Shown in pieces: positions 10,501 through 16,500 of a DNA stretch of 64,000 bases. The notes under the pieces are model-generated. The model was given only the letters and a program-made list of their open reading frames with translations. It was not told where the DNA came from and did no database searches. Both the position numbers and the translations under genes were made by a program. Position 1 is the stretch's first letter, and every line of letters begins with the position of its first letter. The stretch is from Magallana gigas (taxonomy: Eukaryota): NCBI RefSeq assembly GCF_963853765.1, contig NC_088858.1, positions 22,506,001 through 22,570,000 of the forward strand. Direction: 5' to 3'.

Positions 10501-13500
10501 GATATGCTTACTGATGCTGAGAGCTATTTAAAAATTAGAAGGAAAAAATTCAAGTTCTTTACAAAAAAAATTTTCTCAGCACAATTTCAAATTTCAAATT
10601 TCCTCTTTAAATCAAAAATACATCTCCTGTTCCTAGAATTTTATAATCGTGTTAATCCTTCAGGATTTCACTTACTAAAATACATTTACAGAAAATGGTT
10701 AAAAAAAATATAGAGTTAAAAAATATGTACACAGCCAGCAGAGAGGAAGAAAAAAGCTGTAGTTATAATATGCTGTTTGTTTGAAGAGAGAGATAGCATT
10801 GATGAACAGTTCTGGTTTATCTGTGAATACTTATCAGGACAACAACACCCTAATGTGTTGCATAAGATTATATTTTTCCTCTAGCTACCACGATCAGACT
10901 CTTTCCTACACAGTTTCTGTGTGATCTGTCTACATTTTTTTACCCTAAAGTTAACAGAAGTTTTGTGATGAAAGCCATTGTTTTGCTTGCCTGCCCCCCC
11001 CCCCACCTCTCTCTCTCTCTCTCTCTCTCTCTCTCTCTCTCTCATTATGCTTTTCCAAAGTATGATAAAAATAGTGAAAACAAACTCATCAAACAAAATT
11101 CTCAATATTGCATAAGTTGAAAATCTCCACAAGTTCTGTGTTTGTCTATCATCACCTTGTTTGATTAACTGACATTCCATGCAGAGAAGTTCCAAGCAAA
11201 TAGTGAAATACATAATGCATTCACAAATATACTTCAAAATCATGCAATAAGACTACTGTTATTTTCAATACAGCAATACAAATATGCACTTAAAGAAGGA
11301 TGAATGGTGTGAAGATCGAGGGTTGAATTGATTAATGCAATGCATGTGTGCAGAAAATACTTCTGTGTTATTAGTTAAGCTGAATGCACTTGCAGCATTC
11401 ACATTCAAAATGGCCTTCAATCTTCTCTCACTTGTCCAAAGCATTAAACTCAAAATCTTTAGAAAGTGTTTCCATGTTTCAATATAAAGGCAATTTGCTG
11501 AAGCTTTTTCAGGTCCATTTGAACTGAGGCAACATCAAGCTTAATTTGTGTGTGTGTAGGAGCATTTGCTTGCCACAAGTTGAGCATAATAATTGGAAGA
11601 TGTGCCATATGCTCAGACCTTTCAGGAAATGAGGAAATATTTACAATTCGCTCCTACCAGTTAAACAAAGGTATTTCTCTTACAACTTGCCCACTGACAA
11701 ACTCCAGGGCCATAAAATTGCAACAAAGTTTCTCTCAGGTGTAAATACTTTGCTTACATCTTAAAGCACAAGAGCAAAGAGGGTGAAAAAGATCCAATTC
11801 CATGAGATATAGCACTTTTGAAGTTTTCAAGAAAATTAAGAAGAAAAATACCTCTACTAGTTGATTAAGGTTATCAAAATAAGTTTCTTCATCAATAGTC
11901 ATCTGGTTTTTATGATAAATAATCCGATAATGCTCCACTTTTCTCTGGTAGCACACACTCAGCGTATAATCTCCCGGGTAGTTAACACTTTCTCGTATAA
12001 GAAAAAGTCCATCTTCGCGTGGATGGAGCAAGTCTTCCGCCATCTTCCTCTCGATTTTGCCATGGTACCATCTACAATGTAACCAAACATATGCAGTGTC
12101 ATGCAACATGCAAGTCAAATATCACTATAGGCAGGGTAAACACAAAACACCACTGAAGACAACGCCGATGAACTGCTATATAAATGTTGATGGCTGTGTA
12201 TATAATTAGGACACGGTCCAACATTGACGATTCCCGTTAATGGCGACTGGTTTGTTAGTGGATGGTGAGTGACTGACGTGAAATAGTTTTTTTAGAGCAC
12301 ACACAAGTCTAAAATCAACACTACTAAGAAGCCCATTCTACAAAATTACCTTAACACTCAATCTAGAACAAGTATGAGTATACTTATAAATATCACTTAA
12401 TTAACATACATGCACCTTTCTTTTTCATTTTTGATATTTGGACTATAATGCTATAATGTGAATACCAAATTTTCTCAACACCAAGGATTACACATTTCCA
12501 TCTTCTTAATATATTTCTTTTATCTATCATATACATTGTAATAATTTTTGGTAAGTATTTTGCTCCCACAACCATACAATGCACTTATATTTTGTGATCA
12601 TTGTTGTATTATGAGATATACAATAGATGCATATTATGTACTTGACGCTTGTTATGGGGATTTTTTTCCCCAGTACCTCACTAAAAGCCCTTAGATTTTA
12701 ATAACGAGACCTCTTGCTCGCCCATGTATACTTGGAGCACAAGTACCTATAAACTAATAAAATACTTTTGTGGGAGAACATAAAAAATCTATTTTATACT
12801 TCTTGAACTTTTGAGTAGGTCCTTGCACCTCCAACACTTTGACAACAGATATGAGCATCTTTTTCTGTACCTTAATTAATTTCACACAAATTTCTATTTC
12901 AAGAGAAAATTTTAAAAAGTATGTGGAACAAATTTATTTTGTGTTTGTTTCTTGTATATTTGATTGTGATCTTGTACATTTTGTGTCAAGGAATATTGTA
13001 ACATTTTAAAGTCTAGACACTAAGTACTGGATTTGACATGTACCAGGTACTAAATGAAATATTTTATGCTATGGGATGATGATTGATATTTCATACAGAG
13101 AAAAAAAAAACCATAATATATAATATTCAAGACCTGTCAAATTAATTTCATTGTCAGAAAATCATTTTCACTTTTGATACCTATAACTGAACACAATGAC
13201 ATCATACCTGTTTTATCAAGCTGATTAAATTTAAAACAAAAATTTAATAAAAAATCATAAATCACAGGGAAGGTTTGGGGAAAACAACATTAAAATCACA
13301 ACACTGTGTCTTGGAGTGACTTGGACTAATAATCTAACTATGTGTATAGAAAGCAAGTGCTCTGGCTAAAAGACAACAACACAGAAAGCTTATGGTAGGT
13401 ATTACACCACAGCCTGAGTCATCTCATTAAGTATGTACTGTACTGTAAACGACTACCTCAATACTACATACATGTACACAACCTGACGGTCTCTTACACA

Positions 13501-16500
13501 AGCCCATGCCTAATGGGCAATCACTTCATGTCCACCCCCCAGGGACTAGCAATTTCTGTATCTCTATAATCTCTTCCTTGTCCTTACATGTATCCCACTA
13601 TTATACACTGTATTGATATCAATCAATACATAAACATACGTCCTTAAGTGTCTTTTAAATTAAACCTTGTCATATATTTAACATCTACACATTCTTGAAA
13701 TGACATTTTTCCTACACTAAGTATACATCCGTGATCATTTTCTATTCTTGTGTGTAATTAAGTTCCGGAGTTTAAAGTGCAATTAATTTATAAAATGATA
13801 GTGATTTCGTGGAGGATTAAATCTTATGGGCATGGTTCAATGGTTTGGTCAAATTTGTACAAATGAGATGGACAGGTAGCAATCTATATCCTCATACATA
13901 CGCACACACAAACACACACACACACAGAGTAACTAATAGATGTTTTACATGACTTGTCTGCCTACTGGTATACATGTTTAACCTTTTTTGGGTAATCAAC
14001 TTTGATAAAGAAAGTGAAATTATCCAAACAACGCCCTCAAGATCCTGTCTGAATAAGTCATTACTAATTAAAAAGACTGAATTCACAAATTCAATTCAAT
14101 TTAACTTGGTTTGTACTGGATTAAAGGTTAAATTGCAATAAATGTAATGGATTCTTTAAAAGAAACTTGTATCTCTAAATGCCATGTTTGAAATATAGCT
14201 TATTTTTTAATTTTTGAAGCTAAGAGAGCGCAAACACACACACTTTGTGTGAAATATGTAAATCGTGAGTATCAAGGATATATGTTAGCAATTACCACAT
14301 ACTCCTGGTTAACATAATAAATGCTCAGCTAACATAACCCAGTCTGTACAGTAAGGTTGCCAGCCCATATTGAGTCATTTTTTGTAAAACAGGAAACTTA
14401 AAACCAACATATAACATGTATGTATGATCCATGTGTATCGTCTTTAAAACTGGGTGCATGCATGTGTGACAGAAACTCAAAATCAAGACAGAACTATTGT
14501 TCTTTAAGGTTGGGCGGTTGAGGAGCATTCAAAAGTAACAATCCCAGAAATTTTTCGGGGGTAGAAGAAATAAAAAATTGTTTTGATTTTACAATAGAGG
14601 GTCATCTCCTTATCACGGTGACATAATAATTATCGCATTTTTCCGTTTAAAACTGGAACTGAACCCTAGCAATTGTACACATGCCAAACAGATTATTAGA
14701 CACAAAAAAAAAAAAAATGGGACTTCCTATTTCCTCCCTCTCTACTGATCTGTGCCAGCTAGCGAAGTAACACAAGACTTAGCTGCGGTACCTCAACGAG
14801 CTGAATTAGGTTATCAAACAGACAGTCACCACCATCCACTTCTAACTTGTTGTGTTTAGCGATAATTCTATAGTGATCCACCATGCCCTCGAAATAAATG
14901 GACAGAGTGTAGTCCCCCTGGAAGTGGACACTGTCTCTGACCAGGAAGTCGCCCTCCTCGCGGAAATCATTTAACAGGGCCTCCGCCTCCTCCCGGGAAA
15001 TTTTACCATGATACCAACTGAAAACAACAGCAGCATGACGGGTTTTTTTTTTTTTAACAGACAAAATATTACATATCCTGTCAGTGTGCAATTGACTTCC
15101 CAAAAAAACTTCTTTAAGACAAATATTCCTATCTTCAATTGCCTCCCCCCCATCTGAAATTTCTTTTCAAACAAATGACCACTTTTATTTATCAAGTTTT
15201 TGTTGATGCATTGTAGCTTTTTCTTAGACTTGAATTCCGCCAGAAGAAACACTGCAACATTAGAGACTTAATTATCCAAAAATTTATATGAGGACCTGTT
15301 ACATAAATATCAAATTTTTTTCAATTTGTTATCCTGTTAATATTCTATGACTATACAGATACAAACAGTCACACAGACGAATGTACTTACGGCATGGCCT
15401 GTAAATGAACCTCTTTCCTTTTCTGTACATATGTGGCAGGTACCATTCCTTCCTTTCCACTTTCATTTTTACCTTTATACCAGTTTGGGTCCTTAACAAA
15501 GTAAATTACAGATATCATCTTTAAAGTTACTCAAATTACAAGTAATTGATATTCTTCCAAAAACTAATTTTACTAAACTTCCTTGCTGTTCTCTTTTTTT
15601 TAAAATGTATTCGTAACTTGTAAGATTTATTTTTCACACGGTCAGTAGGCATGGAAACTCAATTTCATTACACAGCAAAAATATCAAGCCTCTAGTAGCA
15701 AAGAGTTTTTCAACTCAATTTTTTTCTTCAACCATGCAAAGCAAACTCTCAAAGCAATCTTTATATAACATTTGACAATCAAATTTAAATGCTAACTGTA
15801 CCCAAGACAGACTAACAGCTGAAACATTTCTTAAAAAATTAAATAAAAAAAAAAAAAAGGTTGATCGTAAAAAAAATAGTTGTTTTTAACTTGTTCCTTT
15901 TCCCTGTTTACAAGCATTTCTAATTTATCTTGGATGACTAATATTTTGACAGGCAATTTTTAAACGTCTTTCTTTAACCTGTTTAGGTAAAAAATCACAC
16001 AAAACAAGCCGACTGAACCGACCTTAGTGGGCTGTACTATGGTGAGAACATCGCCTTTCTTGAAAGGTAAATCATCTGGTGAGGATCCTTCAAAGTTATA
16101 ATTAGCCACAACCTGGGTACCTCTTGACCATGCTTCTTGATGCTGCTGAGTGAGAAAAAAAAAACAAGAATAAATTTACACTTCCTAAAAGTTCACACAA
16201 CATTATTTCTCAAATGGACTGTTTCAACATTTTTCTATCATGTTAACATCTTAATATTGTCATTCACTGCTTCTCTCTCTCTCTCTCTCTCTCTCTCTCT
16301 CTCTCTCTCTCTCTCTCTCTCTCTCTCTCTCTCTCTCTCTCTCTCTCTCATTTGATATATGTCAATCTTCTACAGAAATTTAACCACAAATTAACAATAA
16401 CACCCACAAAGTACATAATCAAGCCAGTAAAACCCTTTTCATATTTTATGCTCTTTTGGGTCCTGCCTATTTTATATCATCATTTTCACTGGAATTATTT

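Follow-up and report, generated by a model that had tools for sequence, protein, structure and literature searches.

Introduction

Mutually exclusive tandem exons are known from a number of genes, including FGFR2 (IIIb/IIIc), PKM (exons 9/10), Mef2c/d (alpha1/alpha2), tropomyosin and the SCN alpha genes (exon 5a/5b). Csk is the master off-switch of the Src-family kinases, with an SH2 domain that governs both the location of the enzyme and its allosteric activation. In this report, we discuss the Csk gene of the oyster Magallana gigas, which is contained in a stretch of 64,000 nucleotides (nt) of genomic DNA (contig NC_088858.1, positions 22,506,001 to 22,570,000), hereafter the window, in which all coordinates are counted from the first letter unless another locus is named. 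Very probably, this is a single-copy gene in which the exon encoding the core of the SH2 domain has been tandemly duplicated, with the two copies, here termed exon A and exon B, being spliced in a mutually exclusive manner.

Such an event was not described in the literature recovered by full-text searches on exclusive exon use in Csk, on tandemly duplicated exons encoding SH2 domains and on Csk in Crassostrea. No SH2 case of mutually exclusive splicing was found in the literature searched, the papers retrieved on human tandem-duplicated exon substitutions making no mention of an SH2 domain.

The Csk Gene and Its Two SH2-Core Exons

The Csk gene occupies the minus strand from ~16148 to 1577 and was mapped exon by exon by tblastn with a transcript-derived protein of 454 amino acids (aa) (P0238), to which the protein assembled from the window exons, likewise 454 aa long, is near-identical. 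The predicted product has the SH3-SH2-kinase layout, and its best named relatives are mollusc proteins annotated as "tyrosine-protein kinase CSK" with Pfam SH3, SH2 and PK_Tyr domains. On grounds of orthology, oyster Csk would be expected to phosphorylate the inhibitory C-terminal tyrosine of Src-family kinases.

Between the second SH3 exon and a common exon (Table 1) lie exon A and, 2.7 kilobases further along the gene, exon B. Both complete the CC- codon at their start and end on GAG at phase 0; exon A is bounded by the acceptor TTTTCAG/ and the donor GAG/GTACCG, exon B by ATTGTAG/ and GAG/GTATTT (the slash marking the splice site). Each is matched by the Pfam SH2 profile (PF00017) over the full model (E 2.5e-21 for exon A, 9.1e-26 for exon B), and either encodes ~75 of the roughly 90 residues of the SH2 domain. 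Aligned to each other, with two one-residue gaps, they are identical at 41 of 75 residues (55%). As to base composition, exon A is richer in G+C than exon B (0.48 vs. 0.40 overall; 0.60 vs. 0.41 at third positions) within the same AT-rich gene.

The lengths of both exons are 1 mod 3, and the reading frame is kept only by inclusion of a single copy; joining A to B leads to a stop after 29 codons, and skipping of both to a stop after 13 codons. A sequence-only reading of the window, made before any database was searched, had proposed two intact SH2-core exons with these coordinates, phases and degree of identity, together with the two frame shifts and the lack of a linker between them, and in all these respects it agrees with the present analysis, in which no frame-restoring linker between A and B was found in the oyster.

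Searched in six frames, the complete genome of 564 megabases (Mb) contains exactly one copy each of exon A and exon B. The nearest relative of exon A genome-wide is exon B (56% identity), followed by SH2 exons that align partially, at 37–54%. Because exon B is its nearest relative and each of the two is present in a single copy, exon A is a local tandem duplicate and neither a fragment of another gene nor a retrocopy.

Transcript Evidence for Either/Or Use

When exon A alone was used to search public sequencing runs, it was found in 20 runs from eight studies, under three organism labels; the contig sets of these runs comprise 20–94 million letters, compared with the 564-Mb genome, and the runs carry the guessed labels "RNA?" or "?". 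The Logan contigs of four runs from four studies (X2, X7, X9 and X20) were aligned on positions 10100–15650. In X2, X9 and X20, the introns have essentially zero depth and the exons alone are covered, while X7 also holds low-depth intron contigs. All four types of joint read CT..AC on the plus strand, corresponding to GT..AG on the gene strand. The joints of SH3 to B (12071>15391), B to common (10428>11852) and A to common (10428>14792) occur in all four runs, and that of SH3 to A (15017>15391) in three, the exon A contig of X7 extending into the upstream intron instead. Three single contigs of 280–282 nt (X2 record 6, X9 record 27 and X20 record 12) contain exon A in full length, flanked by 24–27 nt from the common exon on one side and 30 nt from the SH3 exon on the other, and the succession SH3-B-common is contained in one contig of X2 (record 4). 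Neither an A>B joint (14792>12071) nor an SH3>common joint is listed in the four runs, contigs being a format that drops rare variants.

Spliced joints, empty introns and a single genomic copy occur together; therefore, the contigs are transcripts. A retrocopy as their source is ruled out, given that exons A and B are single-copy in the genome. The junctions that the sequence-only reading had named for mapping, written in the direction of the gene (15391>15017, 14792>10428, 15391>12071 and 11852>10428), could each be found in the spliced contigs, across independent runs from public archives. Its central proposal, one gene making two Csk isoforms by mutually exclusive SH2 exons, is likewise upheld by single contigs reading either SH3-A-common or SH3-B-common, with no A>B joint among those listed.

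In X20, exon A contigs reach between about one third and one half of the word depth of exon B contigs, compared with ~4–5% in X2, X7 and X9, depth being a poor measure of expression level. Because A contigs have the lower word depth, exon B is regarded as the major form, with exon A being minor in three of the four runs; the A:B ratio may vary between samples.

Distribution and Origin of the Exon Pair

An exhaustive profile search with exon A recovered ~16 divergent A-type open reading frame (ORF) fragments, all of which start with (S/R)W(Y/F/H)HG, end with LV(E/Q) followed across the junction by V, corresponding to the same splice positions, and carry the motif (V/I)DGG(D/E). Five other mollusc loci share the succession SH3 > A > B > common and have AG/GT sites, namely those of Crassostrea virginica (L016), Ostrea edulis (L017) and the gastropod Biomphalaria glabrata (L018), that of a heterodont-like bivalve (L010) and a mytilid-like locus from a vent metagenome, in which A again lies upstream of B (L013); the common exon falls outside L010 and L013. 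Across these five loci, exon A measures 223 or 226 nt and exon B 220 or 229 nt, all lengths being 1 mod 3, and both exons run from phase 2 to phase 0, as in the window. The locus of C. virginica shows the matching order of the second SH3 exon, A (3154–3379 of that locus; 226 nt), B (5899–6118; 220 nt) and the common exon. In Biomphalaria, A (226 nt) and B (220 nt) are separated by an intron of 511 nt. In the heterodont-like locus, positions 10048–14107 contain three such exons, A, B1 and B2 (223, 220 and 220 nt), with AG/GT sites, and the sequences indicate that B has been duplicated again in the lineage of this locus and Mya arenaria (P0283), which may, thus, possess three Csk isoforms.

Full-length A-type isoforms have been predicted (NCBI isoforms X1/X2/X3) for the bivalves C. 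virginica, Saccostrea echinata, Argopecten irradians, Mercenaria mercenaria and Mytilus galloprovincialis, for the gastropods Haliotis cracherodii, Biomphalaria glabrata and Bulinus truncatus, and for the cephalopod Octopus bimaculoides; B-type proteins are on record for the same or sister species. In a maximum-likelihood tree of 64 SH2-core sequences, all 24 A-type sequences fall on one side of a branch with a support of 97/92, and the mollusc B-type exons are placed among the Csk SH2 domains of other animals; the underlying alignment has 74 columns only, including the columns that constitute the A/B signature. A look-up of exon A in the ESM Atlas returned generic SH2 clusters only.

Among the taxa examined, the exon pair is confined to molluscs. 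The Csk gene of the annelid Owenia lacks an A-type exon, its single B-type SH2 exon being separated from the second SH3 exon by an intron of 259 nt; in the brachiopod Lingula, one B-type exon with a clean upstream intron and no A-type exon was found, the search being limited by assembly gaps in the downstream intron. Of the two, exon B represents the ancestral and canonical SH2 exon of Csk, exon A being an old, diverged copy of it. The simplest reading of these sequences is one duplication before the split of bivalves, gastropods and cephalopods, absent from the two non-mollusc lophotrochozoans; the mollusc sampling on which this date is based consists of bivalves, gastropods and a cephalopod.

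Selection on Exon A

Between M. gigas and C. virginica, exon A differs by 23 synonymous substitutions and one non-synonymous substitution, giving a ratio of non-synonymous to synonymous rates (dN/dS) of ~0.007. The corresponding counts are 17 and six for exon B (dN/dS ~0.06) and 17 and zero for the common exon (dN/dS 0). Around exon A, alignability between the two species ends ~20 nt upstream and 3 nt downstream. In Ostrea edulis, protein-level identity to the window exons is 92% for A and 85.5% for B. Furthermore, the exon A peptide is 99–100% identical in near-identical genomic ORF fragments from many Logan runs, the translated intron flanks of which vary. Judging from these comparisons, exon A is under very strong purifying selection.

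Decay of exon A in relatives of the oyster was considered and rejected. One fragment from a Logan contig (P0004) looked degenerate, yet all of its changes are of the C>T type (H>Y, R>C, L>F), a pattern consistent with a bisulfite library. More generally, contigs from bisulfite-converted libraries can mimic decayed copies in protein searches. Exon A is intact in related species, as is evident from its dN/dS ratio against C. virginica and from the A-type clade comprising bivalves, gastropods and a cephalopod.

Regulation of Exon Choice

Intron sequence is conserved around exon B over ~210 nt upstream and 530 nt downstream (Table 1), with 76% identity to C. virginica and several perfectly conserved blocks of 20–26 nt. 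The flank of exon A is almost unconserved (~20 nt), with the exception of the element AGAGGGAG in its downstream intron. One block upstream of exon B, TGCATGTTGCATGACACTGCATA, shows no change between the window species, C. virginica and Ostrea edulis, which represent three oyster genera. It contains two UGCAUG motifs at −40 and −33 from the exon B acceptor, the second of which overlaps a branch-point-like UGAC. A single TGCATG is found 27 nt before exon B1 of the heterodont-like locus and 22 nt before exon B of the mytilid-like locus, the introns of which are otherwise unrelated; no TGCATG precedes the single SH2 exon in Lingula or Owenia, nor does one precede exon B in Biomphalaria. By our own estimate, TGCATG is expected in a given 40-nt stretch in ~0.7% of cases at this base composition, the motif having been picked after it was seen. 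Downstream of exon A, GCATG occurs at 108–109 nt in both Crassostrea-type species, and the purine/G-rich element GTAGAGAGGGAG, the core of which, AGAGGGAG (14741–14734), is invariant in the three oyster genera, is a candidate intronic splicing enhancer.

UGCAUG is the binding site of Rbfox proteins, which promote skipping when bound upstream of an exon and inclusion when bound downstream of it (PMC5840707). An Rbfox-like exon encoding an RNP1/RRM segment is present in the genome (C7:17215840–17215941; L019), where it matches a segment of the human RBFOX1 RRM at 85% identity, which is weak evidence; it is probably part of the oyster Rbfox gene. A genome search for Fox-1_C (PF12414) was blank, as were its controls, and is uninformative.

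The conserved tandem UGCAUG suggests Rbfox-type control of exon choice. According to this model, the choice between A and B in bivalves would be set at the 3' splice site of exon B, where an Rbfox-type factor bound to UGCAUG over the likely branch point would block B and divert the SH3 donor to A. Products containing both A and B, or neither, would be unproductive owing to their early stops, and it is plausible that these wrong combinations are cleared by nonsense-mediated decay.

Two ways of enforcing exclusion were rejected. All sites are GT-AG without a U12 donor consensus, which rules out U12-type exclusion, and steric exclusion is not compatible with A-B introns of 2.7 kilobases in the oyster and 511 nt in Biomphalaria.

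An A/B choice that is real and is set by means other than Rbfox, such as competing RNA structures of the docking/selector kind, another factor acting on the exon B flanks or promoter-coupled splicing, is, in our view, rather unlikely. It would account for the several conserved blocks besides UGCAUG in the ~740 nt of intron shared around exon B by the two Crassostrea-type oysters, and for a gastropod locus that has the exon pair without a proximal UGCAUG. However, no long or conserved complementary pair linking A and B was detected; an inverted-repeat scan of 10260–15491 gave only short, imperfect pairs (71–93% complementary) of low complexity outside the conserved blocks, and competing RNA structures were rejected on this ground. 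Moreover, the UGCAUG block is the one conserved block upstream of exon B whose invariance extends to Ostrea, and the mytilid-like and heterodont-like loci have TGCATG in the corresponding position within introns that are otherwise unrelated.

Points Against Mutually Exclusive Isoforms and Further Alternatives

Several points speak against the account of two exclusively spliced, functionally distinct isoforms under Rbfox-type control. The runs used as transcript sources are guessed to be RNA, Logan contigs are uninformative on levels, tissues and rare forms, and the missing A>B joint counts for little as evidence. As for regulation, the evidence for an oyster Rbfox gene is weak and the Fox-1_C search was blank; with the proximal UGCAUG missing upstream of exon B in Biomphalaria, this regulation, if real, would apply to bivalves only. 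The functional split between the A and B isoforms is read from sequence. Finally, four mollusc protein models carry both SH2 cores (P0164 from Mizuhopecten, 525 aa; P0283 from Mya, 646 aa; P0284 from Pinctada, 538 aa; and P0185).

These models would be expected if A and B were joined in a tandem-SH2 Csk, with the frame being restored by an unrecognised linker or by an alternative donor. The A-B intron of Biomphalaria contains, 41 nt from its start, a GTATGT donor that would put A, the 41 nt and B in one frame, as encoded by P0185, and a real minor A+B product is possible in this species. A short A-B intron, hinted at by the 14-residue link in P0185, was also considered there; the locus shows an alternative donor or a model artefact instead. 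In the oyster, A joined to B shifts the frame towards its early stop, read-through from exon A into its downstream intron ends at an in-frame stop after 10 codons, this intron offers no good donor for restoring the frame, and the A>B joint occurs in none of the four runs. In addition, the fused models are "hypothetical", "partial" or contain intron read-through, resembling ab initio errors. A tandem-SH2 Csk is, hence, very unlikely, and the four models are probably annotation errors arising from the exon cluster by intron read-through and cryptic donors.

That exon A is a functionless duplicate included by splicing noise, with B alone making a working protein, would fit its word depth of ~4–5% of B in three of the four runs, but is strongly disfavoured and hardly credible in view of the 23 synonymous against one non-synonymous change beside unalignable flanking intron, the better conservation of A than of B in C. 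virginica and Ostrea, the A-type exons with intact splice sites in bivalves and Biomphalaria, the predicted A-type isoform of Octopus, and a depth of roughly a third to half of B in X20.

Residue Differences between A-Type and B-Type Exons

For an assignment of the differences between the two exon types, 23 distinct A-type and 40 B-type sequences were aligned and numbered on mammalian CSK, the SH2 domain of which gave the best-matching solved structures (2RSY, 3EAC and 1K9A). The phosphotyrosine-holding residues R89, R107, S109, H128, Y129 and R130 are invariant or nearly so in both types; among the A-type sequences, R89, R107 and H128 are present in 23/23 and S109 in 22/23. Because these residues are kept, both isoforms would be expected to bind phosphotyrosine.

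The A-type sequences depart from this common basis in three regions. In the phosphate-binding BC loop, they show E108D (22/23) and N111H (23/23), and Pro113 is lost in all but one. In the beta-D region, E127D is accompanied by replacement of Y133 with T, A, L or others, position 133 being Y or F in 37 of the 40 B-type sequences. The EF loop is rebuilt by T139E, I140V, an inserted Gly, E142G, E143D and V144C (Cys in 19/23), together with loss of the aromatic residue at 145. Furthermore, A-type exons are without Cys121, which is typical of invertebrate B-type exons and present in 34 of the 40 B-type sequences. A pairing of the EF-loop Cys with a Cys encoded by the common exon, equivalent to C164, is a guess.

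In mammalian Csk, Y133 is part of a pocket formed by Y116, Y133, L138 and L149 that is needed for activation by SH2 ligands, and the betaB-betaC linker and the betaD/betaD-betaE stretch are placed against the N-lobe of the kinase (PMC5233614). Y133 and E147 are among the residues involved in ligand-stimulated activation (PMC10016382). Oyster exon A also keeps Y116, L138 and L149. Placed on this framework, the A/B swap touches both the loop that determines peptide specificity and the surface that relays ligand binding to the kinase. Since the BC loop, the EF loop and Tyr133 are changed, the A isoform probably has different recruiting partners, a different coupling to the kinase, or both; the residue changes point at least as much to an altered SH2-kinase coupling as to an altered choice of ligand.

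Tentatively, one may go further and envisage the A isoform as a functionally separate Csk, which would recognise other phosphotyrosine sites through its rebuilt EF loop and conserved Cys, would show an altered activation coupling due to the loss of Tyr133, and would be switched on in Rbfox-expressing neural or muscle cells, so that molluscan exon choice would solve what vertebrates solved by the Csk/Chk duplication. As a whole, this extended proposal is considered rather unlikely.

Annotated Features and Side Observations

The features discussed above are compiled in Table 1.

Table 1. Features of the Csk gene in the window (coordinates on the 64,000-nt stretch).
Feature	Coordinates	Strand	Characteristics	Evidence
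SH3 exon 1	16023..16148	-	residues 10–51 of the full-length B isoform P0238	tblastn, 100% identity
SH3 exon 2	15391..15491	-	phase-2 end (..ATG CC), donor GTAAGT	sequence; joints 15391>15017 and 15391>12071; tblastn
Exon A, alternative SH2 core	14792..15017	-	226 nt, phase 2 to 0; FLVRDSVHF...LEVDGGDC	Pfam SH2; spliced contigs; dN/dS 0.007
Purine/G-rich element GTAGAGAGGGAG	14734..14745	-	~50 nt downstream of exon A donor	three-species alignment
UGCAUG block TGCATGTTGCATGACACTGCATA	12090..12112	-	19–41 nt upstream of exon B acceptor; tandem UGCAUG (Rbfox-type), overlaps branch-point-like UGAC	
Exon B, canonical SH2 core	11852..12071	-	220 nt, phase 2 to 0; ...MTIDEETYF	Pfam SH2; joints in 4 runs; 100% identity to P0238
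Conserved intron around exon B	11319..12283	-	~210 nt upstream and 530 nt downstream	blastn, MAFFT against C. virginica (L016)
Common exon	10260..10428	-	169 nt, phase 0	joints 11852>10428 and 14792>10428; contig breaks at 10260
Kinase-domain exons	8267–8157, 6411–6226, 5558–5454, 2483–2385, 2087–2001, 1753–1577 (with stop)	-	approximate limits	tblastn (P0238); ORF list

Two microsatellites lie within the introns of the cassette, (GA)n at 10978–11054 in the B-common intron and (TG)n at 13892–13937 in the A-B intron. Elsewhere in the window, a single open frame of 411 aa (52055–53290, plus strand) matches Pfam MFS_1 (E 4e-17) and looks like an intron-poor gene, or an exon, of a major-facilitator transporter. 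Unrelated to Csk are four proteins of ~580–690 aa with an unusual multi-SH2 architecture of four SH2 matches each (P0006, P0007, P0009 and P0011), of which P0006 has two alternating repeat types after a transmembrane-like segment.

Comparison with Known Systems

In its organisation, the oyster locus resembles the known mutually exclusive pairs. The two exons are adjacent, homologous, of similar length and of the same phase, and the contigs spanning the cassette carry one or the other; they go back to an ancient duplication and are each subject to purifying selection; and the exchange changes part of one folded domain, the remaining protein being identical. One of the copies has a conserved UGCAUG next to it, a feature known from the Mef2 pairs regulated by Rbfox (PMC5840707). 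What sets the oyster pair apart is the swapped module, in this case an SH2-domain core belonging to Csk. This kind of exon pair is textbook knowledge, and the sequences themselves are known, both isoforms being present in the automatic annotation of many molluscs; the novelty lies in the combination of module and gene, with most of the SH2 domain being swapped in Csk, the pair being conserved across conchiferan molluscs, and the minor exon being the more constrained one. The locus also serves as a warning for annotation, considering that alternative exons have been fused in several mollusc gene models.

Among SH2 domains, the canonical one of CSK (human residues 82–171; PDB 1K9A, 3EAC and 2RSY) aligns end to end with exon B and, less so, with exon A. 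Vertebrate CSK seems to have its exon boundaries around the SH2 core at the same positions, the partial protein P0117 ending exactly at ...MQLVE. Unlike the tandem-SH2 proteins Syk, ZAP-70 and SHP-2, the oyster has A and B out of frame with each other, and no A>B joint was found.

The closest functional analogue is the vertebrate pair of Csk and Chk/Matk, with which the mollusc isoforms share the presence of two Csk-type proteins of the same architecture and divergent SH2 domains, one broadly used and one more specialised. Exon A itself is not Chk-like, the solved Chk/Matk SH2 structures scoring below CSK and the A-type exons forming their own clade. The exon pair parallels the vertebrate gene duplication, from which it differs in that molluscs use one gene and exon choice, with only the SH2 core being different and the kinase domain identical. 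The changes at Tyr133, in the BC loop and in the EF loop all concern residues or regions that have been studied in mammalian Csk. Half a billion years old and attached to a kinase that is identical in all other parts, the two SH2 cores constitute a natural experiment on which surfaces set the choice of ligand and which the coupling of the SH2 domain to the kinase.

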